64,000 nucleotides of DNA from Mytilus californianus (taxonomy: Eukaryota): NCBI RefSeq assembly GCF_021869535.1, contig NW_026262745.1, positions 70,742,001 to 70,806,000 on the forward strand. The letters are read 5' to 3'. The notes under the pieces are model-generated. The model was not told where the DNA came from and searched no databases. It worked only from the letters and a program-made list of their open reading frames with translations. Positions 10,499 through 28,100 of the stretch are shown here, one piece after another; position 1 is the first letter of the stretch, and each line of letters starts with the position of its first letter. The position numbers were made by a program, and so were the translations under genes.

Positions 10499-11810
10499 TT
10501 TTTAGCTCCCCTGGCCATCTGGGCCAAGTTAGCTTTTCTCATCACTTGGCGTCCGTCGTCCGTCGTCGTCCGTTAACTTTTACACAAATTTTCTCCTATG
10601 AAACTACTGAACCAAATTTAACCAAACTTGGCCACAATCATCATTAGGGTATCTAGTTTTAAAAATATGTCCGACGACCCCGCCTACCAACAAACATGGC
10701 CGCTATGGCTAAAAATGGAACATAGGGGTAAAATGCAGATTCTGGTTATATCGCTGAAATTAAAGCATTTAAAGCAAATATGAGACATAATAAAAATGTT
10801 CATCAGGTTAAGATCTATCTGCCCTGAAATTTTCAGACAAATCAGACAACTCGTAGTTGGGTTGCTGCTCCTGAATTGATAATTTTTTGGACATTTTGCA
10901 GTGTTTGGTTATTATCTTGAATATTATTTTAGATAGAGATAAACTGTAAACAGCAATAATGTTCAGCAAAGTTAGATCTACAAATAAGTTAACATGATTA
11001 AAATAGTCAATTGACCTCTTAAGGAGTTATTGCCCTTTATAGTCAATTTTTAACAATTTTTGGTAATTTTTGTAATCCTTTACAAAAATCTTTTCCTCTG
11101 AAACTACTGAGACAAATTTAACCAAATTTGACTACAATCATCATTAGGGTGTCTAGTTTAAAAAATGTGTTCGATGACCCCGCCTTCCAACCAACATGGC
11201 CGACATGGCTGAAAATAGAACATAGGGGTAAAATGCAGGTTTTTGTTTATTATTTTTTAAACCGTTATAAATAGAGAAAATCTGAAAGTAGCAAAAAGTT
11301 CAGAATAATGAGCTCTACCAAATGTTAATATACGTAAAAACTGTAAGACAAATTTTTATAGGAGTTATTGCCCATAAATGACAAATTTTACCATTTTATT
11401 TTCCTTTTTGCCTATTATCATGAAAACTATGATATTTAGAGAGTAACATTTTTTTTTCCGTTATGCCTTATATGATTTAAATTATAATAGATAAATAAAC
11501 ACTTTAAATCACAAAAATGATCAGCGAGGCAAGATCTATTAAAAAGTCTGCCGATATAGTAAGTCTTCTGTCACTCTTCATAGGAGTGATTGCCCTTTAA
11601 TGAGGATTTGTTTTACCCTCTTTTGTGTTTTGAGCAAAAACTAAAGAAGACAAAGAGAAACTAAACAGACTTAAAGATCAGTAATACAAGATCAACAAAA
11701 TAGAGATTTTTGTCATGAAGTCTATTCAATCTACAATGTTGGAGATTGTCCTTTGTTTGATATGCACATAGACCAAGTTGAGCGACACAGGCTCGTTAGA
11801 GCCTCTAATT
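10499..11810 (+). mobile_element. Helentron-associated (HINE/Helitron-N-like) non-autonomous element with internal ~500-bp duplication
   Basis: Head tttttagctcccctgg, (cgtc)n microsatellite at ~10550, duplicated block at 10590 and 11092, and 3' hairpin caggctcgttagagcctctaattt. Confidence 0.7.
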
Positions 11811-12249
11811 TTATTTCCGGATTTAATTTACGATGATGTCTTACATTCCTGAGTGGTTTGGAGAACAGGACGATTGTCAATATATTACTACATACAATCT
11901 TTAGACACAAATGCATAATAAAATGCAATTCTTACTTTTGATTACACAATTTTACAACCTCTCTCAGCTTTAGCTAGTTTACCAATATGAAGTGTCGCTC
12001 CCATACGGTGAGACAAGAGGAACGTATTGACAGAGTCGTCCATGTGGATTTTAAAAGGACGAAAAAAGGCGAAGGTCAATATGGACACTTATAGTACCGA
12101 TATAAATATCTTGTTTGGTAATTTTTCTGGTTCCTAAGGCCTGGGTTGGATAACATCCCTTTTAAAAAAATTATCGGAATTTACAACATGTTTTAGGATT
12201 TTTCATTCGCTTTAATGCAATAAGCCGCAATAAATAGCAAACCAGAAAT

Positions 12250-12600
12250 CCATCCATTCGATTGATTGATTGTTGTTTGATAAACGTCCAGCGACAAATA
12301 TTTGATGCGTGTTCAGGATGATAACAACTTTCTAATAAATACAATATGCAGGTTCTGCAATGGAGGCTGTCCAAAACGAAGGTCGGCCTCGGTGAAATTT
12401 TGATTGCCACTCGAAAATGAGGGTATATTGGATAGGGACAGAAATGTTGCCTTGCAACAAGGACACCTCTTGTAACCCTAAAAAGTTGTTACAAGGGTTC
12501 TTACGTGCAAAGAGCGCGGCAGTCTCTTTACACGAGGCATTGGACATATACATGTATCGTCCCCATTCTGAGGGGTGGACAGAGGCAAATTTAAGGAAAC
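12250..12600 (-). mobile_element. SINE-like repeat (copy B, inverted)
   Basis: The reverse complement contains gctctttgcacgtaagaacccttg...ttgttgcaaggc...tccaatataccctcattttc and the tail tcctgaacacgcatcaaatatttgtcgctggacgttt...caatcaatcaat, homologous to 5790-6150. Confidence 0.6.
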
Positions 12601-13884
12601 ATCTGAATGAGGGGGTAGGGAAGTTGGAGTGAAGGGGGAGCGGGGATATTTTGGAATTCTTTTACCGATTTTTGTCTTGGAGTTAGGGAATGCAAGTGGC
12701 AGTAGATGGGGAGTTGGATTTGGGTGATAGGGTAGAGGGAATTAGGGACACCCCTATCCAACCCCTTCGTCTAGACCGGACGAGGCTGTGTATTTGTACA
12801 TCCCGCACAGCCAAACGAAAGCTAAACTTTGGCAAGGGGTTTACTTCGGTCAGAAGAAGATCGAGAATGACTCCATATTTCTATCCATCAGTCACCCTTT
12901 CATCATTGCTAATGTCAGTTCCATTGTTAAATTCTCCGGTGTAAGTACGCATGGAAACTTTATTTTTTCAATGTCTTACTGAAATATGGCTTCTTATTCA
13001 AATTTATTGTTATAAAAGTGTACATATATGCTGACTCTAAATTCGAATTATTTACTTTATTTACTAGCACATTTCTTTTAACAGTCTTATCCATTTGCAC
13101 GAGTAATTAGGAAAACCTATTAAATAAAAATCCTAAGAATTACACTATCTACACAGTCAAAAAAAAGAAATCCCAATGGTTACCAGATTGACGGACAAAC
13201 ACTCATTATTTTTAACATTGTGAATTGAACATTGTCCTATCTCCGCAAAAACAACACTTCTTTTCATATCTTGTTAAACTATTTTTACAAATATGGCTGT
13301 GGATACTCTGAGTACAGACAAAACGAAGCATCTAGGAAAGTAATCAGGCATGGCTGGACCTACACAAATAAAAGTTATATGCATTTTACAATGTGTTTTC
13401 CTTCAGAAACAAATAAAAAAAAAAAAAAAGAAGCTCACCTGGATTTTGGTCTACAGAAGATAGCAAAATAAACATACAACTGAGTTTCATTGGATACGGT
13501 CCATGCACTCGTTTACACTTTAAATCAAATGTTGTTGTCCAGATAAAATATTCTCCCTCTATTGCCGGTAGAAACTAAACCAGTTCACATCAACAAGAAC
13601 ATGTATATGAGGGAGGCTTCTCAAACCGCCTTCCTAGAGGCGGATTATGGTGTAAAAAGGGGGCTCCTCATGGGGCTACATTATAAGATAATAAAATTAT
13701 GGTTAATGCATAAACTTTTTACATGTCACACTAGCTCCAAACGTTGTCTAGTTTTGCCTCCCCTTTCAAAATCCTGGATCCGCATCATTTAAATTCGCAA
13801 CATAGTTTATTTTGGCTATTCTACAGGCAGGTATAAAAAAATAAATGAATAGCAAAATCCAGTTGAATTTTTTCAAGGACGTAT

Positions 13885-14100
13885 AAGGGAGCTACCATTT
13901 GATTTTTATGGGGGGGGGGGGGGGGGGGGGGAGGCTAGGATGAAATTTGAAAAAAATGTAGGACACGGGAGTTTTGAGTAAAAAAAAAGCAGGATGGGCA
14001 ACTTGGCATAAAAAAAAACGAGGATAAACTAATAAAGAAAAAGGCAGGACCGAATAGAGTGAAAAATAAAAAGGCAGGACAAAATTTTTCATCCTAGCCC
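13885..14100 (+). mobile_element. Truncated MITE-like element with poly-G tract
   Basis: agggagctaccatttgatttttatg(g)n-aggctaggatgaaattt ... aaaatttttcatcctagccc. The inner inverted repeat is present but the outer right arm is missing. Confidence 0.55.
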
Positions 14101-14383
14101 TAGTGTATTTCAGTTTTCTTTTTAATAAAGAGACTCACTGACCATAGGGTACTTCTCACGCTGAAAACACAAAACAGTTTTGTGGTTCATATTCACACCC
14201 TTTCTTGGTTATCTCCCATGTATGATCATGTAGACAGAAATTACAAATGTAAACAACTTGGGCGTGTTTTATTGGTCTCTTCTGTACATCTCCAGAATAT
14301 CTTCTGGTGAAGCGTCCAAAAAAATGAGTCTGGGCATCTTCTGGAGATATCCTGGAGAAGAACCAATAAAATACATAATCAAG

Positions 14384-17285
14384 ATGGCGTCAAATGTAGC
14401 CGAATTTTTAATGTTGGATGACTTAACCGACGTTTCTGACGATTTATCAGTTACATCATCTCATTCTAACGACATGACTGTAATTGTGTTCTCTGTTTTG
14501 GCATCATTGTAAGTATAAAAACAAAGTTAATCCAGGAAACTATGCAAAAAGTTACGACAAAACAGACGATTTTTCGTTCCCAATTGTTAATAATCCATTT
14601 TTGGACGGTAAGGGAACGACCATTTAACTTCTAGGGGTGGGGGTTATTGTTTTTTTTTCTAAAAAAATATGTTAATCCCCAATTTGACGAAAAAAAAATT
14701 TCTGGTCAAGCGGATGACAAAAAAATATTCTGAATTCAAATTCCCCCATACATTATAGTATTAAATTTTGAAAAAAATAATCTGATTGATCGCGTTGATA
14801 AATTTATATGTTCCTTTTGCCTCTTCTATAGGTCACAACTTCTTCGCCGTGCCCGTGTTTGTAGTCGCGTTTATTTATATTTTTTTAAGTATAACTGGTA
14901 AAATATTCCTTAAGTCTTAGATCGTGTAACCACAAATTGATTAAACCTTCGACCAAAATCTTACATTTAACAAAGTTTTGATGAGGAAAGGAGAAGGTTC
15001 ACGAAGGGCCAAGTTTTTTAAATCGGGCCAAAAAATTACAAATTTCACATAGGCTTGTGATGATAAGTACTATTAAGACAAACATATATATTTTTGGCAT
15101 CTTCCTTTAAAATTTATGAAGCTATGACCTCTTAAATAAACATTATTTGTATTTTAAGGTCAATTTTGGTCATTTTTTTCAATAATTTTAATTGTTTTTG
15201 GCATAATTAACATTGGCCGCCATCCGGCCACGATCCAAAAAGTTTTTAAATTGATGAATTCTATATCAAAATTGGAATCTTTTGGTTACAATACATTTTT
15301 CAAGCTTTTAGGTCTGAAAATTGCACAAAATCGTCATACGTTTTTGTACATCGTACCAATCTTTTAAGCTAAGCCAATTGCAACAGATTTTTATAGTTGG
15401 TTCTCATCTTGTTCTTTGACACCATTGTTTAAGCTAAGGAGAAGGATTGAGCGCTCCTAAATGTTTCGAACCATGCCCACATACTTTATATGCCTGTCCA
15501 AGTCAGGGGTGTTATGTTGTTGGTTCGTGTCTGTCATATTTATTTTTCATAAACAGTTTTAATTGTAATTTTAGCCGTCAGTTTTCTCTTATGAATTGTT
15601 TTTTTTTTTTTTGTCTTCATTTTTTAATGTCAGGGCCTTTTATAACCAACTTTACGGTATGGGTTTCCTATTGTTGAAGACCGTACTATGACCTATATTT
15701 GCTTATATCAAATTATTTGAACACTGGTGCATAGTTATCTGTCTCATAGGCAATCACGCAATTAACAAAGAAAATTGGTTTGGAAAATTCGCTATGTTCA
15801 TTATGTTTTTTTTTTTCGTTATGCTTTCTTAGCTAAATTTCTTTTTGTCAATGTTTCTCTGATGTATGATCGAACATACACCTTGTCTGTCTATATCAAA
15901 TACGTTTAAAGTAACCAAACTATATTGTTTTTGTATATATATAAAAGATATACCCGCAGACTTAATCTGATGTCAAGTAAAATTAAGAACAACTGGTTTT
16001 AGGGAATGAGGTGACGGTGGGGGAGTAGAGAGGAGGTGTTGTGCGAATTATCTTCACAAATTTCTTCAGTTTCTTCGCATGGTTATTCACATTTCATTTA
16101 TTTCTAGCCTTTTTGTGTTTCATATACTATATGATATTCATTCTGATCCTATCTTGGACAGTGTCCATTCTTCTTGTGCTGTATCTGTACCCATGAACCT
16201 GCGTTTTATTTTTTTCAAAGAGAACATATGAGTCATACAAATAACTACAAGGTTCTTCGTCTAATTTCAGAAACAGATCTCATCATGTACGGATACAAGG
16301 TTATATAGACACGGTTGTGAACAATTATATAGCCACAGATTTTAGAAGAATGTTTCGTCTCACCCGTCCTTGCTTTGAATCACTGCTTGAAGTTTTATCT
16401 ACTAGGCCTGAGATGGAAGTACGTCCAGACATGTTCGGGGGCCGCGAACGAGTGGGTCTTGAAAAAACCGTTCTAATTGCACTTAGATACTTTGCTCACC
16501 AGGGAAACATTAGATCCATATCAGAACTGTTTGATGTTGCGGACTCAACAGTGGTTATATGCAGAAATAGAGTAGTTGCAGCTTTGATGGCGCTAAAAGA
16601 AACCTATATTAAATGGCCATTAGACCATAGAAAGCAAAGACATATATCAAATAAATTTCAAGAGAAAAGGGGATTTCCTGGTGTTATTGGTGCGATCGAT
16701 GCTACGCACATTCAAATACAACCACCGAACGAACACCCACAAGCATATGTGAATAGAAAATCCTATCACAGCATCATTCTTCAAGCTGTTTGCCTACCAG
16801 ATACCTCATTTTCAAACTGTTTTATTGGATGGCCTGGAAGTGTGCATGATTCTCGAGTTTTAAAGAACTCAGAGTTATGGGCGGAAGGTGAAAATGTTTG
16901 TGGAGAAAATCATATAGTTGGGGATGGTGCTTATCCTCTTAACCAATGGTTGCTAACGCCTTATCGAGACAATGGCAATCTTAACGCTGAGAAAAAACGT
17001 TATAATTACATTCATTCATCCACAAGAACTGTAATTGAACGTAGTTTTGGAATTTTGAAAGGACGTTTTCGCAGATTGCATTTTATTGAAACCAAGGAAA
17101 TGGAAACATCCTGTGATATAGGTGTTTCATGCTGTGTCCTTCACAACTTTTGTATCCAACACGGGGACATTGGCGAAGAATTCATAGAGGAAGATTATGG
17201 GAACTGTCATGCAGCTGCAGTCCAGGCCGACAATGACAATACAGGTGCAACTAAGAGAGACGGAATAGCCAGAAACTTACGTTAG
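14384..17285 (+). CDS. HARBI1: Harbinger (HARBI1-family, DDE_Tnp_4) transposase, 2 exons: 14384-14508 and 16271-17285, ~379 aa
   Basis: Catalytic motifs GAIDATH, VGDGAYP and VIERSFG are intact. Exon 1 (MASNVAEFLMLDDLTD...LAS) ends TT|GTAAGT and exon 2 starts ttcag|A AAC AGA, so phase 2 matches and gives ...NRSHHVRIQGYIDTVVNNYIATDFRRMFRL. The symbol marks the family, not orthology to the domesticated host gene. Confidence 0.92.
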
Positions 17286-17778
17286 TGATATGAGAACTTA
17301 ATCTTCATCATAAAACATTTATAAACCTGTTCTGTTCTCTATGTTAAGTATTGAAAACATCAATGTAATCCTATTTTATAAGGAATCATTTCATTGTTCA
17401 TATTAAAATCTTTAAAATTATAGTGCAGTTTGTTCTCAAATTTTGTAAACTTATTTGGTCGTCTCGTGGACATTAATCTAATGTCTCTATCTATGTGAAA
17501 GAGAAGCCAAGTTAAGTTGTAGTTACTTAGTACACAAGCTAACCAACGTAGGCAATGGGGATGCATGAAATGTAATTGAGGGTGTCAGTCTAATTATTGG
17601 TGAATCAAATGTATGTGATTTTACAGTTTACATCATGAGACAAGAATTCGAATAATATTTATTTCATAATTCTCCAATAAACATAATAACAACAACTTAC
17701 TGTTGTGAAACTAATTAGATGATTAAAATTAACAATCGCAATTGTAAATATCATCCAAAATAATAAATAACACACTGT

Positions 17779-18290
17779 TGTAAAATAAATCAAATTAACA
17801 ATTGTAAATTTCAGGTAAAAAAAACACCATTTTGTTGTAAAATAAACCAAATTAACAATTGTAAATGTCAGGTAAAACCCCGGGTAAAACATCATACTGT
17901 TGTACTTTTGTAAAAAAAACAAATTAACAATTGTAAATGTCAGGTAAAAAACATCATACTGTTGTAAAATAAACCAAATTAACAATTGTAAATGTCAGGC
18001 CGGTAAAAAACACCATACTGTTGTACTGTTGTAAAATAAACCAAATTAACAATTGTAAATGTCAGGCCGGTAAAAAACATCATACTGTTGTACTGTTGTA
18101 AAATAAACCAAATTAACAATTGTAAATGTTAGGCCGGTAAAAAAATCATACTGTTTTACTGTTGTAAAATAAACCAAATTAACAATTGTAAATGTCAGGC
18201 AAAACATCATACTGTTGTACTGTTGTTAAATAAACCAAATTAACAATTGTAAATGTCAGGCCGGTAAAAACATCGTACTGTTGTAAAAGA
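17779..18290. repeat. ~55-67-bp tandem array (~8 copies) inside the Harbinger
   Basis: aaaataaaccaaattaacaattgtaaatgtcaggccggtaaaaaacatcatactgttgtactgttgt is repeated between the transposase and F-box stop codons. Confidence 0.9.
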
Positions 18291-18501
18291 AATTAAGTTT
18301 TGAAGTTCCATTTAGTATTCAACACATCACATACACGAAGTCAATGTCTATGATTTATTTAGACCTGATAATGCAAAAGTAAACAATCTTTTTAACATTT
18401 TGAATAAAAGAAACCTTTAGAAATTCTATGCACAGCTACTAACTCAAACAACATAATATTAAACACTCACACTTGTGTTTTGTCTATAGACACTTACATA
18501 T

Positions 18502-19202
18502 TCAAAATAACCAATAAGCACGCAATTGTATCTTTCCCTCATAATATGTGTCTATGAAATTGCATGCATTCTGGTAATGTGAGGCTAGTTCAAACGACAA
18601 ATGGGCTCCCATTAATGTGGGACAAAATGTTAAAGCTGTTAAAAATTCGTCATAGGTACACATGATACCACATGCATCTAAATATTCAAGACTTAAATTT
18701 CTCAAAGTATCTAGAATAGAACTCATCATGACCTGTGTAAATGAAAGATAAAGGTAGGTCAGCTTAGACAGTGGTTTTATATTTTCGAGTTGTTTATCAT
18801 TTATTTTTGTTGATGACAGATTAAGCACTTCTAAACTTAGTAAGTATTTTAGGAAGGAAATATCTGACAATGGACACTCGGTAAAGTCTAAAACAGTTAG
18901 GTTACTAGCATTTACAAGGCCATACATAATATGGTTAAATCTCTCTACACCAACTGTATACACTTGACCTCCAAGTTCTAATACTTTCAACTTTTGTGGG
19001 AATGTAGTAACAAGCAACAAGACATGTTCGTCAATATGACAACTGTCCTCAAATGCTACATTGCTATACAGTGATGGGTGTTGTCTGATAATCGTCCAAA
19101 ATCTAACACAAACTTTTGACACATTTCTCAATAATTCACAAACAGGTATAAGCTGCATTATTTTGACAAAAATCTCATCATGTAAATCCATTAAGTTTAA
19201 TC
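18502..19202 (-). CDS. F-box / leucine-rich-repeat protein exon carried inside the Harbinger
   Basis: F-box LMDLHDEIFVKIMQLIPVCELLRNVSKVCVRFW is followed by LRRs LKVLEL, LTVLDFTEC, LEVLNLSST, LTYLYLSFT and LEYLDACG. There is a strong phase-1 acceptor tattttctatttttacag|GA at 19203/19202. The ORF-track extension 19203-19362 is probably intron. Confidence 0.85.
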
Positions 19203-19590
19203 CTGTAAAAATAGAAAATAAAATAAACGTTTTAAGATTTTCTAAATCAACATTTACATATAAAAACAAATCTGATGGCAGTAGAATTTTAGTTTTCTCA
19301 TATACCCGGTACATGATAGAATATAAACATAAGGAGATGTGGTATGATTGCCAATAATACAACTATCAACCAAAGTAAAAATGAAGTGGATATAAGCAAT
19401 TATAGATAACCATACGGTCTTCAACAATGAGAAAATCCCATACCGTATAGTAAGCTACTAGTATAAAAAGCTCTGACACGGAAAATATTAAAAAAAATGA
19501 TAAGAGAAATCGAACGGCATTATTTATAAAGTACATTCATTGTAAATGTGCACACTTTTCTTCCATCTATATGACAACTGTCATCTCTAT

Positions 19591-22500
19591 TTATTTTTTC
19601 ATCTCATTAATTAGTTCCCTAAACATATTCATTTTCTCACTGTGCATTCTAGCTTTCTCAGCTTTTTCTTCTTCTCTTTCCTTTTTTTGTTCCTCCATGT
19701 ATTGTTTCAAAAAATCTACAACGTCAGGAGAAGGACCACTTCTACGCTTCTTTTCATTTTTAGGGGGCTGAACAGGTTCCGTTTCTTTGTCATTATCGTT
19801 GTCGACTTCATCAACTTTGTCATTGTCATTGACAACTTCATCTACCTTTCTTTTATGACACGTATTTAAGATTTTCGTACCTGATGTGGTGCTTGGTTCT
19901 ATTGTAGGATTTCCACCGAGAATTTCCTCCAGTTCTTCCTGGAAAGCACACGACTTCTTATCAGCACCAGATCGGTTGTTGTGGTCTCTTGTTCTTTTCA
20001 GGGCTGTAATTAATGTTTTCCATTTCCCCATCACCTGTTCCCAGGTAAACTTGTATCCATTAGATGCTAGTTCTTCTGCTATGCATAACCACATTTTCTT
20101 CTTTGTGTTTTTCCCTTTTTGTGTTGCATCATCTCTTTTTTTTATTTCAGCTAGTAGAATTTTGGTTGCTGGTACGTTCCAAAAAATTGGCTGGGTTTCC
20201 TCAGAAGACTTACTAGTAGATGGCATTGAGTCTGTAGTTGAGTCTTCTGTTGGAGCTGTCCGGCTTTCGACTCCTGAAGAAAAAAATAAAAATATAAAAT
20301 CAGTTGAAAAGGGCTTAATTAATTAAATCGATCATCTTTGTTAGCCAAGGGTCATGGATCGTACAGAACTGAGAGTATTCACAGTGTTAAAAGCTAGTTC
20401 GAAGTCAAAACCCACTTTTAAAAAGTCATGTATCTTGGCGACTGTTTTTTTCTCTCAAAATATGTGAACATTTGTATAGAAAGCACATAGAACTACGAAA
20501 ACCATTATAAATAGCATTAGGTATGAACTAGACAACAATAACAAAAAAAATTAGGTTTAATATTTTATATATAAGCAGAAAATACAAATAATATTTCGTT
20601 TTTATCGCATTCAGTTTGGTTCAACTTCGTCAAAATAAGCTAAAGTTCGAAAATATATTCTAATCAATTTCTGACAGCCAAAATAAGGACAATATGTTAC
20701 AACATGGCGTTATGGCAAGGCGTATAACTATTTATTTGATTTTCTCATAATATATATCAGAGATCTTATATGATAAATAAGATATCTCACTAAATATATA
20801 AGATATCTTATATCATTAAATTTTTGTAATATATCTTATATATTATATGAGATATCTTATATATTACATAAGATATCTTATGTACAATAAATAGTTTATA
20901 AGATATATTCCATACTTTATATGATATCTTCTAAAGTTTATAAATATCTTGTAAATTATATGAGATATAAACTATATAAGATATCTTATAAACTTTATAA
21001 GATATTTCATATCGTATAAAACATATCTTATATACTATATAATATATACTATATAAAATATCTTAAATACTATATAATATATCATATATACTATATAATA
21101 TATCTTATATACTTTATAATATATCTTATATATTAAATGTATAAGATATAAGATATACAATATAGAATAATACTATATTTCATATACTATATAAGATATC
21201 TTATATAATATATAAGATAAGATATATCACATAGAATATAAGATATATCATATAGTCTATAAGATATCTTATATACTTAAAAAGATATATAGTCTTAATT
21301 TATAAGATATCTTATAAATATCATTTATTTAATATATGTTATATATAATAATATCTATATAAGATATCTGATTAAATTTGGAAGATACCTTATAAAATAT
21401 ATAAAATATCTAAAAAAGTATATAAGATATCTTATAATAAGCTGATTATAGATGATATCTTATATAGAATATAAGATATCTTTAAAAGTTTATGAGGTAT
21501 CTTAAATAGTTTATAAGATATCTTATATAGTTCATACGATATCTTATATAGTTTATAAGATATCTCATATAGTTTATAAGATATCTCGTATAACTTATGA
21601 GATATCGTATAAAGAAAATATATAAGATATACTATAAATTATATGAGACAGCGGTGTAGGTAGGCCCAAATGATGTGTACTCAATGAAAGGGAAGGAAGT
21701 CTTACGGCGAGTGGTCTCGGGCCGCTCAAGACACACCGAGCTCTGGGGTAATGGTGCAAAATCCTGCATTCTCGCGATTTCCTTGGACTTAAACAAGCCT
21801 TACAGGAATCCTATTTCATCAGTAATAAGTCAACTTTTAAAACTGGAATATATGATAAATAAATTTAAAAAAAATATATAAGTTAGAGAAAAACAAACTT
21901 CTAATGTGTGGTGAATTGATAAAGATTGGATATTAAGTACAATTAAAATATAAAATCAAGTGCAACCACCATATATTTTAATTGTTACCTATTCAGTATC
22001 AGCCGACTATACATTAGAATATCCAAATTTTTAAGCCAAAACCGTCTGTGCAACTTAAAGGGTATTTTTAATGGGAATAGATAGAATAAATAGAATCACA
22101 TTTCTCTATATTTTATTTTATAAGTGAACAAGCAGTCTTTCTTTCAGCTTTTAATGCTCAAATTTAATTCTAAAAATCAAGGACAATTTCTGTTCCTTTC
22201 TTCTACTGATGATGTTGAAAACCGTGACTGCTGAAATTTATTTTCCACGGTATATTTTCCATGGTCTCTTTAGCACGTCATATCTTATTTCGTCAATTAT
22301 CTTGAAATCTTCAGAAAAAATGTCAGGGTAAGGAGGCATAGTAGACGTTACAATTGTGTTCTGACATCCCGAAAATTCAGCTAGATTAAGTGTTTGCATC
22401 ATCTACACAATCATGATGCAGGTTCCGTCAAAGAAAAGAGTAGACCAGTTTTCGGATCGAACTGAATATAGCTACAAAGTGACTATTAACATATGTGTGT

Positions 22501-25108
22501 ATAATACTTTTCAATGTATTCTATTAATTCATGCAGTTTTATTCTTACTAGATTTACCATATTTTATTTTTGTAAAATTTTCGATGTGTACGCAGCTGCC
22601 TTTTTTGTGTACTGATGGCTACGCGCCTGTGAGATATCTTATAAATTTATATAATATATCCAATAAACTATATGAGATATCTTATAACAATATAAGATAT
22701 CGTATAACTATATATTAAGATATCGTATAAACAATATAAGATATCTTATAAACTATATATGATATCTAATAGAATATATAAGATACCTTATAAACTATGT
22801 AAGGTATCTTATTCCAAATATATATAAGATATATCTTATAAACTTTATGAGATATCTTATAACATATATAAGGTATCTAATAAAGTATATGATATATCTT
22901 ATATTATATACTATATTAGATATTGTATATACGATATAAGATATCGTATATATACTATATACTATATATGATATCTTATATACTATATGATATCTTATAT
23001 CTTATATACTATATAAAATATCATATATACTATATACTATATAAGATATATTATATACTTTATAAGATATCTCCTAAAGTTTATAAGATATCTTATTAAT
23101 ATTTTTTATTTAAGATATATTATGTACTTTATTAGATATCTCATATAAGTAGTTAAAATGATATATAAGACATTACGATATCATATAAACTATATAAGAT
23201 ATCTTATAAAGTTTATGAGATTTCTTATAACGTTTATGAGATATCTTATAAAGTTTATGAGATATCTTATAAAGTTTATAAGATATCTTATAAAGTTTAT
23301 GAGATATCTTGAAGTTAGAATAAATAATAAAACGCCTTGCTATATGGAGTGTTTATTTTTTTCAAATCTATTTACAACTATAATTTTATGGAAATCAGAC
23401 ATTGGTACAAATGATTTCAGGACTTAATTTCGGTATGAAATAAAAAATTGAATCTCTTTTTAGCTCAAAGGGAGTGATTATCAGACCATGTTATCAGACA
23501 TATATCCTGTATAAATTCATTGAAATCAGACATTGGTAAAAATGAATTTACAAAACAATTCATACTCTGGCATTTGTTAGTCTAGTATGCTTTTATTTAT
23601 AATTTTAGTTCATTTATTTGTATCGCAGTTAAAGACTACGATCTGTAATAGTATACATGATTATTTAGGGGTCAGCTGGAGACCGCAGCCGGGTGTAGGA
23701 TTTTATCGCTGTGTTGAAGACTCGTAGATGGCCTTGGCCTGATTTGTGCTCTTTGGTCGGGTTGTTGACTCCTTGACACATCCCCCGTGTCCACTCTCAA
23801 TTTTATTTATAAATGTGGATTTGGTTATGAAATAAATAAAAAATACATGTATTCCAACTAAGGGGTGACCATTCGATAATGGGGTGGGTGTGATTTTAAT
23901 CTGATTGCCTTCATTTTAACATGTTGATATCAAAGCTTATAATTATTTGTTTCTGTGGTTGTGCCACGCGAAAATATTTTGACATTTGTATACTTCTTTG
24001 TCCCACTATTTTGAGTATTAGGATTTTCGTTTGCATCCTGTCTTATGTAAGGTCAGATGCGGATTCAGAGGGGGACTCATGGGTCCCCCCCCCCTTTTGT
24101 TGGAAAAATTTGGTTGATTATATAGGGAATCACTGAAGCATGACTAGAGCGGGGCCCCCTCTTAGACAGTCATTGTCCCCCTTTTTGAAACTAGTGAGCC
24201 GCCACTGAAGGTTATTTATTTTCAGCTCCTAATACCATTCGACAAAACACATTCTGGGAAATTTCTTTTGACCGATTTTAGTCTAGGAGTGAGATTTAGG
24301 GAAGGGGACTGAATTGGAAGTTGGGAGGGGATAGGAAAATTGGAATCAGGAACCCCATGTCCACCCCTCTTGAGGCAATACACTATTTTTTGTATGAATT
24401 TTGACATGTTTCTGAAGGGGAAACTTTCTAGCTTTCACGCTTGTCAAAAAATGACAAACAAATCTTTAAGGGTAGTCACAAAATAATAAGTTGAATACTA
24501 GTTGTGGGGAAGACAAATATAATTATGGTCATAAAATGTCAATAATCAAATTTAAGGGTTATTATCCCATCTGTAGGTATGTGTATTACGAAATTTTTAA
24601 ATCATACTAATACCAAAACTGTAAAAATACGGAATACTCTGAAAAGAACAAACGTCACATTTTAAAAACTGTTTATACCCAAAGGAAACGTCGTTCACAG
24701 CCAAAATATGTGTTGTTTTATATTGCATTTAAAAAAAATGGGATTTTGCGGCAATCAAGTCAAGAATTTTACAAAAAATGCTAAACAACATTTAAATTAA
24801 ATAAAAACGTGCTAAGTCACCGGAGTCGAGTGCACCGTGGAAATATTTTTTTTTCTATTTAAATATCCGTCGGAAAAGTTAAAAAATAGACAATAAACGC
24901 GTGGTTATATTTTTTTATTTTTTTTTATACCGCTTTAACTGGTGTCTCGTAATTATAACACTATTACAAGCAAATATTTACCTTCATCAAGCTTATCATC
25001 CCTGCAGGGATGTCCAACAAAGGCTGTCATGCCATAAAAGCGCTTCTCGCAAAGCTCACACTGTATAATATCTGCATTCATTATTTCTCTAATACTCAAC
25101 GACGCCAT
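19591..25108 (-). CDS. Harbinger Myb/SANT (trihelix) DNA-binding partner with N-terminal C2HC-like finger; exons 25108-24982 and 20273-19591
   Basis: Exon 2 has FWNVPATKILL...KKKMWLCIAEEL...FTWEQVMGKWKTL...CAFQEELEEILG and a C-terminal coiled coil. Exon 1 (MASLSIREIMNADIIQCELCEKRFYGMTAFVGHPCRDDKLDE) ends G|GTAAAT, which matches the phase-1 acceptor ttcttcag|GA GTC at 20273. Confidence 0.8.
20713..23342. mobile_element. Inverted pair of AT-rich ATAAGATATCTT arrays (foldback-like), nested in the Myb-gene intron
   Basis: Outer ends TGGCAAGGCG (20713) and CGCCTTGCTA (23342) are inverted and each is flanked by TA. The arrays span ~20745-21650 and ~22630-23310. The inner ends are also inverted-similar. 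Confidence 0.65.
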
Positions 25109-28100
25109 GTTTTTTTATGTGCTCTGCTGTCTAAACCACCTATGTTAAAAGAAGAGGAAGAAGAGGGCCGGAAGATCTTCCGAGTTCAAAAAAACAGAAA
25201 TGGACCTCTTCTGGCTCTCTCCCGATGAACAAAAAAACACGCCCCTTGTTTATAAGATTTTGTATTTAGTGTTTGATTTACTGATCAAACGGATTTTAAG
25301 CTGCATTTATTTCAATTGATAAGTGTTTATCTTATGACATAGGTGCCATCACTAACACCCAAACTGTCAAGAGTTACTGGGGTATACATGGTATAGAAGT
25401 TTAGTCACTTTGGTCTTAGTTCGGACTCCTTGATAACTCGGCCCATACCAAAGTCGGCCTGTAACAAAATCGGCCTTTAACAAACTCAAGAAATGATCAA
25501 TAAAATCTTTGAAAGTACTGAAAGGTTCATCTTGCAGTTAACATTTTTATGTCAATAATTTTGTGCAACAGCTTGCGTGTTGATCAAATTCTAAATATAC
25601 ATTGACTGTCAATAAGGTCACCAACTATTCAATACGCCCTTTACAATGACAAAGATTATTGATAAACAATCTAATTGTCAAATATTTATTATTTAATAAC
25701 ACAAGTATAGCTTTTAAATCAGTAATTTTTTTTTTATTTCATACATGACATGCATGACATATATATATAGCTACAGATTTATATGATTCATTCAATCATT
25801 GTAATTATTAACATGATTAATACATGTAATATATCTGAACTAACACAAAATTAAATCTGCCCTCAATTACATTGATTATTGATTATAGATAAAATTGTCA
25901 TCTTTTTATTGTTTCGTGAACACAAATCAAGGTTATAAGTCTACAAAACTTTTATTTTATTACTGTTAGGGGTCAGTTAAGGATTTTTGCAGCTTACATG
26001 TTGGTTAGTAATAGAAAATATTTTATGTACAGATAAATGCCTTTTATAAGTTATTTATTAGATTTGAATTACTTTTTAATTTCTGAAATATTCTATTGTG
26101 TAAATGTGTCAGTTTAACAATAAATCATTACTAAGATAGAAATTTATAACATAGGTAAAAAAAAGTAAGAGACTTTTTGGTGACCTTTTAACAAGGCAGA
26201 ATCGTGAACTGTGACATGGTTTTCTTTTTTTGGTGTATAAATGGGAGGTGCAAAATCAATAGGGATTGCATGGAAAACTTCTGCACTATATTTACATTGA
26301 TGACATTCACTTGTATGGTTCTGATAGTTTTTTTTCTTATAATGATTAATGTTCCAATGTACACATTTGTTCATACATCTGAGTCACAGGAACACAACAA
26401 ACAGCAAAATTATGATGACCATATTTTGACCTCTAGATATCTCTTGTGAACTTTTGGTTATTTGTGTCCTTGGGTTGCTGACTAACACAAAAATGGACAA
26501 ACAGGGACAGATCCTTACAGACATTTCAGTTTTCTAGATGTATTTATTTACACTCTTTGTGATTTTTTAAAACTTGCTGGATTAAACCTTATTATAATTC
26601 CAAAAACTTGTATGTTTTTTTTTGTTTTAGGCATATATGTTGGTGGGAATTATAAGAATTAAAAGGTGTTTTTGTTGTTTATCAATATGTAGAATAGTTA
26701 CTGTGAATTTATTTATTATCATGGGTACCAATTTTCACAGATTGAAGAAAAGTTGTATTTTTGTAGCAAGGTATCTGATTTGTGGTATTGCCAAAGCTAC
26801 CATGGTTACCATACTAATCTATGTATACGATAGAAAATTCTTAAATCGATAAACACTTAAATTGGTACAAATGTAGTTAAGGTAGCTGGCTATGGGGGTC
26901 TGAATGTTTGACTATAGATTTTTCTAAAACTTCTTTAGAAGACTATTGGGTCATTGTACTCTCAAATTTCAATAAAAATTGGGGGTCACAGACCTTGTTT
27001 TTTGGTTGAAATGCATTGAAATCAACAAAATCACAGTTATTTTATATGGGTTATTAATTATATAGGGGAAACTTGATTTTTCCATATTGAGGAAACATTA
27101 CACAATAGAATTGCTTAAATCTCAATGAGGGAATTGCTTTTCATAAATACTTCCAAAATTCTAAATAGAAATAGAGGGTCACCTGGTCACAGACCTTATT
27201 TTCTGGAAAAATTTAAAAAAAAACGCAAATTGTCTGATCAAATTCAATATAATTATCTCCCCTTGCTTTTTCTGAAATTTTTTTCATACACTTAACGAAA
27301 TTAAATTTTTTGATAGATTAATTCCTTAATTTCAAGTAAAACATGTTGTTGTTGTCTATTGAATGATACTTAGTAAAATATTTTTAAACCAGAAAAATAA
27401 TTTGGCAACACAAGGGTTGCTCAGAAAAAAGATACTCCATCTACCTAAATTTGCCTTTACAAGCAAAATCCATGAATAAATGGATGAATGATACAATGGC
27501 AACACAAAATGATGAATCCATAACTTATCTTAGTCATGTTAGTCATGTAGTTGTTATTACAAACTTACTACATGTATTATAGAAGTCATTCTGACTATTA
27601 TCATGATTATTTTGCATTTCAGTGCTTCATTTCATTCTATACAGGAAGGTTTGGACGAGGGGTCCTTCATTTTCTTTATTCTTAAATTTTTTAAGCCATG
27701 TTTTCTCTATTCTTTTTTAATTTTGCTCATTTTTCTCTTTTCTTTATACATTTTGCCAATGTTTCTCTATTCTTTATCATGTTTATATTTAAGCATCCCA
27801 TTATTCTTTACTTTAAATATTTTCTGCCCATTTTACTCTAATATTCTTTATTTTTGGTACCCATTTTTTTTGCAATTTTTTTCTGTATACCCAATCCTCA
27901 TACACTGATAATATCCTTAAAAATGATAATTGTCCAATGACATGTATAATTTTAAAAAAAAAACTTTTGAAAAGTGACATTTCTTGCACATTTGAAAAAC
28001 ATATTTCCAGAAGATGCTGGGTATACTTTATTTCATATACTCAGAAAAAAAACTAGTTACATTGTATTATATGTTGTATATACTTCTTATAAAATCAGAT

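Follow-up and report, generated by a model that had tools for sequence, protein, structure and literature searches.

A Harbinger transposon of Mytilus californianus with a putative F-box/LRR last exon in its Myb gene

In the window, as we call the whole 64-kb stretch of Mytilus californianus DNA analyzed here, positions 14260 to 25244 hold a complete PIF/Harbinger element whose transposase, Myb and F-box frames are all open. The element is intact and was probably active recently. We regard it as fairly probable that this is a mussel-lineage Harbinger with a Myb gene of three coding exons, of which the F-box isoform would act as a targeted SCF receptor.

Element ends, transposase and related copies

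The sequence GGGCGTGTTTT has exactly two matches in the window, in inverted orientation and with CTT on the outer side of both (Table 1). This agrees with the initial annotation, in which TIRs and a CTT duplication enclosed a DDE transposase, a Myb/SANT partner and an F-box+LRR exon. Homology with related elements ends at the same boundaries, at window position 14257/14258 for L002 and L011 and at 25246 for L006. A copy in Mytilus galloprovincialis, with 84.5% identity over 497 bp, stops at 25246. Of the five CCAGAAG sites in the whole 64 kb, three are no more than 90 bp away from an end of the element, and the CCAGAAG/CTTCTGG motifs at the left end may be where its DNA-binding protein attaches. 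The AT-rich arrays of the 4.7-kb first intron probably represent filler added later or a nested repeat; the Mytilus counterpart of this intron is only about 1.6 kb long.

Table 1. Features of the element (window coordinates)
Feature	Position	Strand	Basis
Left target-site duplication, CTT	14257-14259	.	Direct reading; same triplet at 25245-25247
Left TIR, GGGCGTGTTTT, with imperfect continuation to about 14277	14260-14270	+	Homologous to termini of L002 and L011
Left subterminal palindromic region, two CCAGAAG/CTTCTGG motifs	14284-14363	.	Repeats in inverted and direct orientation
Transposase exon 1, 125 nt, donor CATT/GTAAGT	14384-14508	+	Homologous first exon in Mytilus L003 and in L002
Transposase exon 2, acceptor ..tttcag/AAACAG, DDE_Tnp_4 domain and stop codon	16271-17285	+	Pfam; open spliced frame
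Tandem repeat, 67/127-bp period, between the two converging 3' ends; outside the coding layout	17774-18285	.	Tandem Repeats Finder
F-box+LRR terminal exon (putative), acceptor ..tttttacag/GA (phase 1), internal ATG 19191, stop 18504-18502	18502-19202	-	Open frame, homologues, AF2
Myb/SANT-like exon, acceptor ..ttcttcag/GAG (phase 1), stop 19593-19591 overlapped by AATAAA	19591-20273	-	Pfam, open frame
AT-rich 21-bp arrays (20752-21611 and 22632-23310, mutually inverted) in the 4.7-kb first intron	20743-23310	.	Repeat search
Shared first coding exon of the Myb/F-box gene, 127 nt, phase-1 donor GAAG/GTAAAT	24982-25108	-	Open frame; conserved
Right TIR, GGGCGTGTTTT	25234-25244	-	Second of only two window matches
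Right target-site duplication, CTT	25245-25247	.	Direct reading

Once spliced, the two transposase exons give an open frame of 379 amino acids, and the open reading frame at 16317-17285 matches Pfam DDE_Tnp_4 (PF13359) at 2.8e-36 over profile positions 1-158 of 158. Identity with the L003, L011 and L002 transposases is 54-72% at the amino-acid level, and the nearest named relatives of the protein are bivalve proteins labeled "putative nuclease HARBI1".

Three independent Mytilus insertions with different flanks show the same layout, a zinc-finger-like exon, Myb and F-box/LRR converging on the transposase, between homologous TIRs flanked by 3-bp duplications; the F-box exon is thus shared by separate TIR-bounded copies, a check that the initial annotation had proposed. 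The Mytilus element L003 spans 10880-20392 (duplication CTA/CTA). L006 is 99.2% identical to it over exactly 9536 bp and has its own duplication (CAG/CAG), while the Mytilus copy L004 has 99.65% identity over 7.8 kb from the TIR, with CTG at its one available end. These near-identical copies sit at unrelated loci, and decayed and truncated copies also exist. It is very improbable that the locus is instead an immobile cluster of domesticated host genes with an ordinary host F-box protein. Harbinger transposase and Myb genes have repeatedly been co-domesticated, according to two papers (PMC9710019, PMC9392472), and Tegillarca has a solo F-box/LRR exon inside a host-like gene model. However, the unit has TIRs and 3-bp duplications at its ends both in the window and in Mytilus, several copies are nearly identical at unrelated places, others are in decay, and the sequence cluster holding the window transposase has four members.

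The DDE_Tnp_4 transposase, the Myb/SANT-like second gene, the short TIRs and the 3-bp duplication place the element in the PIF/Harbinger (PHIS) superfamily. The strict PIF/Harbinger group duplicates TWA (PMC4482050), and we rejected an assignment to it, the duplications seen here being CTT, CTA, CAG and CTG. The NuwaI group is described as having CWG duplications and TIRs starting with GGG (PMC4482050, Han et al. 2015). The TIRs studied here begin with GGGCGTG, GGGCGTA, GGGCATG or GGGTGTA, and CWG is represented by CAG in L006, CTG at one end of L004 and a plausible CAG in L002, as against CTT in the window and CTA in L003. Judged by TIR and duplication, the window element thus appears to be of a GGG-TIR, 3-bp-duplication type closest to NuwaI, with which it also shares the animal-only distribution and the transposase plus Myb/SANT reading frame, although no F-box has been described for NuwaI. 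Canonical PIF/Harbinger elements (Harbinger3_DR, Ping/Pong) resemble it in their short TIRs and 3-bp duplication, in encoding a DDE_Tnp_4 transposase and, separately, a Myb/SANT-like protein, and in the convergence of two genes that are driven from opposite ends; the window element differs in the duplication (CTT, CTA or CWG, not TWA) and in a partner gene that adds a zinc-finger-like first exon and, as predicted here, an alternative F-box+LRR last exon. A survey of 380 PHIS families reported only two open reading frames per element (PMC4482050). Our literature search found no paper describing a Harbinger with an F-box/LRR exon, just as the initial annotation had known of none.

The F-box/LRR sequence and the Myb gene

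The F-box/LRR exon is open over 229 codons from its ATG, as in the uninterrupted exon of about 230 amino acids seen in the first reading of the sequence, with an AATAAA at 18359, about 140 nt past the stop. When this stretch (33% GC) was shuffled 5000 times, no frame of that length arose (the longest reached 147 codons). L003, L004, L006, L007, L009 and L010 each have a homologue in the corresponding position. In L007, L009 and L010, too, the Myb frame is directly followed by the F-box/LRR frame, and in L001/L002, whose termini are homologous, the F-box/LRR sequence converges on a related transposase. The pair of Myb and then F-box is present in at least five diverged lineages and the F-box/LRR frame is open in at least six. 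That the frame arose by chance, or came with an unrelated nested insertion in the window copy only, is next to impossible given the shuffles and the fact that independent copies and lineages carry this exon in the same place; nothing was found in favor of such a one-off origin, which the initial annotation had named as what would count against it.

The open reading frame of the Myb/SANT-like gene (20226-19591, minus strand) matches Pfam Myb_DNA-bind_4 (PF13837) at 9.4e-11, and the gene is kept in L003, L009, L010 and L011. Upstream, the first coding exon encodes a zinc-finger-like motif, Cys-x2-Cys-x12-His-x-Cys, which is conserved together with its position and phase in Mytilus L003 and L004 and in L001/L002; the Pfam matches of this exon are of C2H2 type only and all below threshold. 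Its donor is in phase 1 in the window, Mytilus and L001, and a strong phase-1 acceptor precedes the F-box exon in all the lineages compared. Splicing from the shared first exon into this acceptor would keep the reading frame, and in the window and Mytilus so would splicing from an internal GT donor of the Myb exon, located in the window after base 19968 (TCTG/GTGCTG). In L009 and L010 the F-box exon has no ATG, so the start codon must come from upstream exons. The Mytilus RefSeq gene LOC143072474 is annotated with two predicted isoforms, X1 (ZnF-Myb-F-box-LRR, 365 aa) and X2 (ZnF-Myb, 259 aa), and M. edulis has an equivalent pair of gene models; the Logan open reading frames of the F-box/LRR family are unspliced genomic reads. 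Because of the phase-1 acceptor, the missing ATG in two lineages and the RefSeq isoform pair, the F-box/LRR sequence is best read, on sequence grounds, as a terminal alternative exon of the Myb gene. The description of it as a third coding unit or cargo therefore stands in part: it is a real, conserved component of this Harbinger lineage, but it is not free-standing.

The splice forms predicted for M. californianus need not be equally widespread. The Mytilus X1 models use the same internal donor position as the window, where the donor (CTG/GTGCTG) is weak, and L007, L009 and L010 lack it. The fusion of Myb and F-box may thus be lineage specific, with a zinc finger-F-box protein as the general product.

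Fold, conservation and selection

Alone, the window protein misses the Pfam F-box threshold (E 0.008) and scores 16.4 bits against the 24.3-bit cut-off of Pfam F-box-like, whereas the homologues P0006 and P0143 clear the Pfam F-box cut-off at 3e-10. A profile of the first 52 residues, built from the family including the window copy, matched only F-box proteins of the PDB at E < 0.2, among them cyclin F (6.5e-7), SKP2 (1.7e-5), FBXL3 and FBXO31. Downstream of the F-box, matches to Pfam LRR_4, LRR_8 and LRR_1 are below threshold (best 2.2e-5), an alignment with FBXL2 covers query residues 4-153, and the LRR part is the best-conserved portion of the protein.

The AF2 model of the window protein (pLDDT 95.2, pTM 0.91) has alternating strand-helix repeats. 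In a Foldseek comparison with the PDB, SKP2 came first (7z8t_F, E 1.9e-7, TM 0.58; 1fs2_A, TM 0.62), followed by FBXL2, FBXL3, KDM2B and FBXL17, and the top Swiss-Prot matches were likewise F-box/LRR proteins (FBXL15 and SKIP1, TM 0.66-0.67). The model of the Mytilus fusion places a beta-beta-alpha first exon and three Myb helices ahead of the F-box and LRR. As modeled, then, the product folds like an SCF substrate receptor of the SKP2/FBXL class, with an N-terminal three-helix F-box leading directly into a curved LRR and the best structural matches in that class; the differences are an identity of only 12-21%, a short LRR arc of about six repeats and, in the window copy, the absence of Leu-Pro.

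In the conserved Leu-Pro of the F-box, the window copy and L007 have histidine in place of proline (Leu-His) and Mytilus family A has threonine (Leu-Thr), and since the window protein also falls below the Pfam threshold, SKP1 binding is not assured. Another reading, which we consider doubtful, is that the F-box has decayed and now caps the LRR structurally, and that the isoform works without SCF, as a protein-binding or competing form at the element ends or on the transposase, akin to the truncated repressor isoforms of the P element. The two altered lineages, the low Pfam score, the stronger conservation of the LRR part and the N-terminal module common to this isoform and the canonical partner would all suit it. 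Against it, other lineages retain the canonical Leu-Pro-Asp/Glu-Glu F-box at a Pfam value of 3e-10, the 52-residue profile finds F-box proteins only at E < 0.2, and the whole-chain fold matches SKP2/FBXL including the F-box helices.

The substitution pattern indicates that the exon evolves under purifying selection. Between the window and L007, dN is 0.13 and dS 0.39 (ratio, 0.34). Other pairs, from lineages only 27-53% identical, give dN/dS values of 0.11-0.50, to be read with the saturation of dS in most of the deep comparisons, and differences by codon position follow p2 < p1 < p3 (e.g., 0.19/0.37/0.58 against L001). The initial annotation had suggested computing this ratio across copies. 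DNA transposons capture host fragments, and the exon could have been taken once from a host F-box/LRR gene by an ancestral mussel Harbinger and carried along with no benefit to the element. The Saccostrea (oyster) element L011, whose transposase is closer (70%), lacks the F-box exon and fits such a passenger; it also tells us that the exon is an accessory module, dispensable for transposition as such. Nevertheless, we judge a mere passenger quite improbable in view of the dN/dS of 0.1-0.5 at such divergence, the frames open in at least six lineages, the conserved acceptor and phase with upstream exons needed for the start codon in two lineages, and the lack of any closer host paralogue among 1.84 billion representatives.

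A possible ubiquitin-ligase receptor of a transposon

Under the targeted-receptor reading that we favor, a single promoter at the right end would drive the short zinc-finger-like first exon, from which three proteins could be made. Splicing to the Myb/SANT exon and use of its proximal poly(A) signal would give the canonical Harbinger partner (269 aa), splicing directly to the F-box+LRR exon a protein of 275 aa, and splicing through Myb to the F-box, by way of the internal donor after the third Myb helix, one of 377 aa. The long isoform would retain the targeting module of the element (the zinc finger, alone or together with the three-helix domain of Myb) and carry an SCF substrate-receptor module in place of the partner's C-terminal tail, so that the SKP1-CUL1 ubiquitin ligase would be brought to the transposon ends or to the transposase. 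The substrate would be chosen by the LRR arc, and the likeliest roles would be turnover of the transposase or transposition complex, i.e., self-regulation, or removal of a host repressor.

Parts of this scheme have parallels. The P element makes a splice-variant repressor that is a truncated transposase; there too, alternative RNA processing yields a second protein with the same DNA-binding N terminus, another C terminus and a regulatory role, but the variant predicted in the window is an accessory Myb protein that gains a whole ubiquitin-ligase adaptor module. F-box mimics are encoded by viruses and bacteria (polerovirus P0, nanovirus Clink, poxvirus ANK/PRANC and Agrobacterium VirF), again selfish elements with an F-box protein that presumably redirects the host SCF ligase, although their sequences are unrelated and their substrate domains are others. 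To our knowledge, none of these four belongs to a DNA transposon, and none forms a fusion with a DNA-binding protein of the element that encodes it. Host F-box genes with captured domains of transposable elements are also on record, namely Caenorhabditis F-box A2 with a Mariner HTH and zebrafish F-box::CxC7 (PMC12062965, which makes no mention of Harbinger, Myb or molluscs). They likewise join an F-box and a transposon-derived DNA- or zinc-binding domain in one polypeptide, but they are host families that took up the domain, whereas the fusion predicted here lies inside a TIR-bounded, multicopy transposon, beside the transposase.

A bolder version, which we hold to be unlikely, is that an animal DNA transposon has its own SCF receptor, delivered by its own DNA-binding module, which would eliminate a silencing or restriction factor of the host at the element ends. 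If true, this would be counter-defense through the hijack of a ubiquitin ligase, as plant viruses do with P0.

Structure and classification of the window element

The 11-mer GGGCGTGTTTT has only two matches in the 64-kb window, inverted with respect to each other, at 14260-14270 and 25234-25244, with CTT directly flanking both on the outer side. These terminal inverted repeats (TIRs), already reported with their CTT duplication in the initial annotation, were found by direct reading and confirmed by a pattern search; an inverted-repeat search of the whole region returned only pairs of AT-rich arrays. We consider these ends true boundaries because homology to relatives from other sources stops there, within 1-2 bases. 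Three open reading frames lie between the TIRs: the DDE transposase on the plus strand and, on the minus strand, its Myb partner and the uninterrupted F-box/LRR exon of ca. 230 aa, all three as described before. The F-box stretch has 33% GC, and none of 5,000 shuffles reached an open reading frame of 229 codons. Both genes of the element are spliced and begin ca. 125 bp inside its ends, and the two-exon layout of the transposase is also found in the Mytilus family (elements of M. edulis and M. galloprovincialis that are distinct from the window's own family). The first minus-strand exon is named only zinc-finger-like, since all its Pfam matches are below threshold, and the intron that follows measures 4.7 kb in the window versus ca. 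1.6 kb in the Mytilus family. Of two AATAAA signals, one overlaps the stop codon of the Myb frame and the other is located ca. 140 nt beyond that of the F-box frame.

Features of the window element and terminal repeats of the M. edulis relative L003
Feature	Position	Strand	Details
Transposase exon 1	14384-14508	+	donor GTAAGT
Transposase exon 2	16271-17285	+	spliced product 379 aa
DDE_Tnp_4 ORF	16317-17285	+	Pfam 2.8e-36
First minus-strand exon	25108-24982	-	127 nt, phase-1 donor, Cys-x2-Cys-x12-His-x-Cys motif
Myb exon start	20273	-	polypyrimidine tract and AG acceptor, phase 1
Myb_DNA-bind_4 ORF	20226-19591	-	Pfam 9.4e-11
Internal GT donor	after base 19968	-	just past third Myb helix, in frame with F-box exon
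F-box exon start	19202	-	polypyrimidine tract and AG acceptor, phase 1
229-codon ORF	between the other two ORFs	-	LRR matches and weak F-box-like match (E 0.008)
L003 TIRs, GGGCGTATTTGTTTGG and GGGTGTATTTGTTTGC	10880 and 20392		CTA at both flanks

The window element belongs to PIF/Harbinger (PHIS), as its transposase, its Myb partner, the short TIRs and the 3-bp duplication show. The target duplications of this element and its relatives are CTT, CTA, CAG and CTG, the classical TWA not being among them. The NuwaI group is described as having TIRs that start with GGG and CWG-type targets (Han et al., PMC4482050); the GGG starts and CWG-type targets of our elements fit this description, but CTT and CTA do not. 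We have kept the classification at "NuwaI-like," a match made on the descriptions of TIRs and duplications.

CCAGAAG/CTTCTGG motifs cluster in subterminal palindromes of the element. CCAGAAG occurs five times in the 64-kb window, and three of these sites (14301-14344 and 25208-25214) are within 90 bp of the element ends, inside small palindromes; they are candidate binding sites of the Myb/zinc-finger protein. Similar motifs appear at the ends of the Mytilus element (L003, 20290-20370). As for the internal repeats, a tandem array with a 67/127-bp period and 83-92% matches (17774-18285) fills the gap between the 3' ends of transposase and F-box, and two AT-rich arrays of 21-bp units in the first intron (20752-21611 and 22632-23310, within 20743-23310) are mutually inverted and resemble a foldback-type insert. 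No RNA genes were detected in the element by Rfam or tRNA scans.

Identity and distribution of the F-box/LRR exon

The F-box of the window protein is by itself under the Pfam threshold, but homologues are over it: two of them (P0006 and P0143) match F-box-like at 3e-10, and another two (P0014 and P0013) are also over the F-box cut-off. A profile of the first 52 residues, window copy included, matched cyclin F (6.5e-7), SKP2 (1.7e-5), FBXL3, FBXO31, CDC4 and FBH1 among solved structures, with no unrelated protein at E < 0.2, and the full-length profile aligned FBXL2 across residues 4-153. AlphaFold2 modeled the F-box/LRR protein with a pLDDT of 95.2 and a pTM of 0.91. Foldseek placed SKP2 at the top of the PDB matches, followed by FBXL2, KDM2B, FBXL3, FBXL17 and TIR1 among LRR proteins; F-box/LRR proteins also hold the top ranks of the Swiss-Prot structural list, and the ESM Atlas feature search agrees with this fold.

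The first protein search gave five anonymous matches, and the Mytilus proteins were reached only by an exhaustive HMMER scan, in which a small set of full-length relatives stood amid thousands of generic LRR matches. One cluster of relatives consists of 365-aa proteins of Mytilus edulis, M. galloprovincialis and M. trossulus, in which the zinc-finger-like exon is followed by Myb helices one to three, an F-box and LRRs. At L003 (M. edulis), the TIRs enclose, in this order, the first exon, a Myb exon whose Myb frame is full-length, the F-box exon and, converging on them, a transposase gene with 54% identity to its window counterpart. The M. galloprovincialis copy (L006) is 99.2% identical to L003 across 9,536 bp, precisely from TIR to TIR, with unrelated flanks and a CAG/CAG duplication. 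A second M. edulis locus (L004) is 99.65% identical to L003 for 7.8 kb from the TIR, has another flank and ends inside the transposase. The F-box exon is therefore shared by independent TIR-bounded insertions, the outcome for which the initial annotation had proposed to look. A SET-domain gene model is found 4.4 kb past the truncated copy (L004:22010-23345); SET-bearing Harbingers had been mentioned in the initial annotation, and this proximity is probably a coincidence. At L006, the element lies no more than ca. 5 bp from the terminus of a second Harbinger (L006:9590-9857), whose terminus, first exon and intron start are 80-86% identical to the right end of the window element (24266-25246). 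The window's own family is thus also present in M. galloprovincialis, where elements of both families are arranged end to end.

Two metagenome scans for more loci found none. L007 belongs to the window's own family (85% identical in nucleotides), and a deletion has removed sequence between the N-terminal part of its Myb and the F-box exon. L009 and L010, two anonymous contigs, each have a Myb_DNA-bind_4 frame followed 16-135 bp on by an F-box/LRR frame, which shares 47% (L009) and 30% (L010) identity with that of the window. L001 and L002 are decayed and have no Myb exon, but their termini are homologous and the first exon, the F-box/LRR exon and a transposase of 72% identity are still present. 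In these two, as in L012 and L013 (all four from ENA ERZ26273167), the F-box exon comes ca. 300 bp after the first exon. We rejected these four loci as extra copies and counted them as a single insertion, since they are copies of one >14-kb unit, which is 92-98% identical among the at least four contigs that have it. The unit, flanked on the transposase side by a satellite of ca. 31-bp period, might be either a segmental duplication by which a dead copy was multiplied or a larger repeat. A solo intact F-box/LRR exon of this same F-box/LRR family, with its own acceptor, was found in Tegillarca granosa (CM056594.1, L005:24045-24755); neither Myb nor transposase lies less than 10 kb away. In a gene model of seven exons (KAJ8319296.1), which overlaps a WD40 gene on the opposite strand, this exon is the last one, possibly either a domestication or an annotation artefact.

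The window and Mytilus families are hardly alignable outside the coding exons, BLASTN finding little beyond the transposase core. For the F-box exon, the closest and unsaturated pair (window and L007) gave a dN of 0.13 and a dS of 0.39, a ratio of 0.34; the ratio of the window to L001 was 0.19 and to L009 0.21, every finite pair fell between 0.11 and 0.50, and differences increased from second to first to third codon positions. The initial annotation had proposed dN/dS as a check, and the values are below 1; as dS is saturated in deep pairs, our reading relies on the closest pair, the codon-position patterns and NG86 where finite. Neutral decay of dead copies is included in these ratios and brings them nearer to 1; the active lineage is therefore under stronger constraint than the figures indicate.

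One relative departs from this pattern. In the oyster Saccostrea cucullata (L011:6955-13444), the transposase is 70% identical to the window's, closer than that of the Mytilus family; the element shares the left terminus and has a Myb of 64% identity and a zinc-finger-like first exon. There is no trace of the F-box exon, with just 660 bp between both 3' ends; the exon was therefore lost there, or has moved between lineages. In either case, the exon is accessory and not required for transposition as such.

Predicted splicing of the F-box exon into the Myb gene

A strong phase-1 acceptor precedes the F-box exon in every lineage examined. L009 and L010 have no ATG near this exon, which can thus be translated there only as an extension of an upstream exon. 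The internal donor in the Myb exon is present only in the window and the Mytilus family. In the window, the predicted spliced products, all of them open, are ZnF-Myb (269 aa), ZnF-F-box/LRR (275 aa) and ZnF-Myb(N)-F-box/LRR (377 aa). Equivalent forms appear among the predicted products of RefSeq gene models: M. galloprovincialis LOC143072474 has two, X1 (XP_076103514.1, 365 aa, ZnF-Myb(N)-F-box-LRR) and X2 (XP_076103515.1, 259 aa, ZnF-full Myb), and M. edulis has the counterpart pair XP_071127511.1 and XP_071127512.1. Logan ORFs of the Mytilus cluster were rejected as spliced transcripts, being unspliced genomic ORFs. The AlphaFold2 model of X1 begins with a beta-beta-alpha first exon of low confidence, which a disordered linker connects to three Myb helices (pLDDT 71-90); beyond a short junction come the F-box and LRRs (pLDDT >93).

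The initial annotation had considered the F-box/LRR a separate third unit, or cargo; the phase-1 wiring and the X1/X2 models indicate instead an alternative exon of the Myb gene. The observed architecture is thus confirmed and that reading partly supported: the component is real and conserved, given the homologues over the Pfam cut-off, the fold and the independent copies, and its function is a proposal. Myb and F-box identity matrices agree only in part (both group the window with L009, and the L010 F-box is an outlier), so we do not claim co-divergence.

Possible role and significance

Harbinger elements are textbook two-protein DNA transposons. Work on Harbinger3_DR and Ping/Pong showed that transposition requires the Myb-like protein, which binds to subterminal sites as well as to the transposase; to our knowledge, the regulation of both proteins is little understood. 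The F-box isoform would retain the shared N-terminal module, in the window and the Mytilus family also the three Myb helices, with an SCF receptor in place of the C-terminal tail. It would bring SKP1-CUL1 to the element ends or to the element's protein partners. Self-regulation, in which the transposase or the post-cleavage complex would be turned over, seems somewhat more probable than an attack on a host repressor. The main rival is a competitor isoform with a role outside the SCF, since two lineages have an atypical F-box: Leu-His takes the place of the usual Leu-Pro in the window and L007, and Leu-Thr in the Mytilus family; four other lineages keep Leu-Pro.

In the part of the literature covered by our searches (Harbinger with F-box, third ORF, bivalves or Mytilus, and transposon-encoded F-box; Repbase and Dfam were outside this scope), no paper links an F-box to a Harbinger. 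No F-box is mentioned in a survey of 380 PHIS families (PMC4482050), in one of teleost Harbingers (PMC9179366) or in the paper on a curated bivalve transposon library with 58 PIF-Harbinger consensus sequences, and a screen for co-occurrence of transposon domains and F-boxes reported no cases other than families of host genes, in Caenorhabditis and in zebrafish. In databases the proteins are labeled "uncharacterized" or "F-box domain-containing protein," and the Mytilus entries under these names are transposon isoforms, a point that bears on annotation. We know of no earlier cut-and-paste transposon that carries a ubiquitin-ligase adaptor, and a lineage splicing in an F-box/LRR would be the first. 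The system looks testable, with small proteins, copies that seem both young and intact, and host mussels of commercial importance; cell-culture assays for Harbinger transposition are already available. The F-box/LRR module could set the lifetime of the element's own transposition complex or attack host repression.
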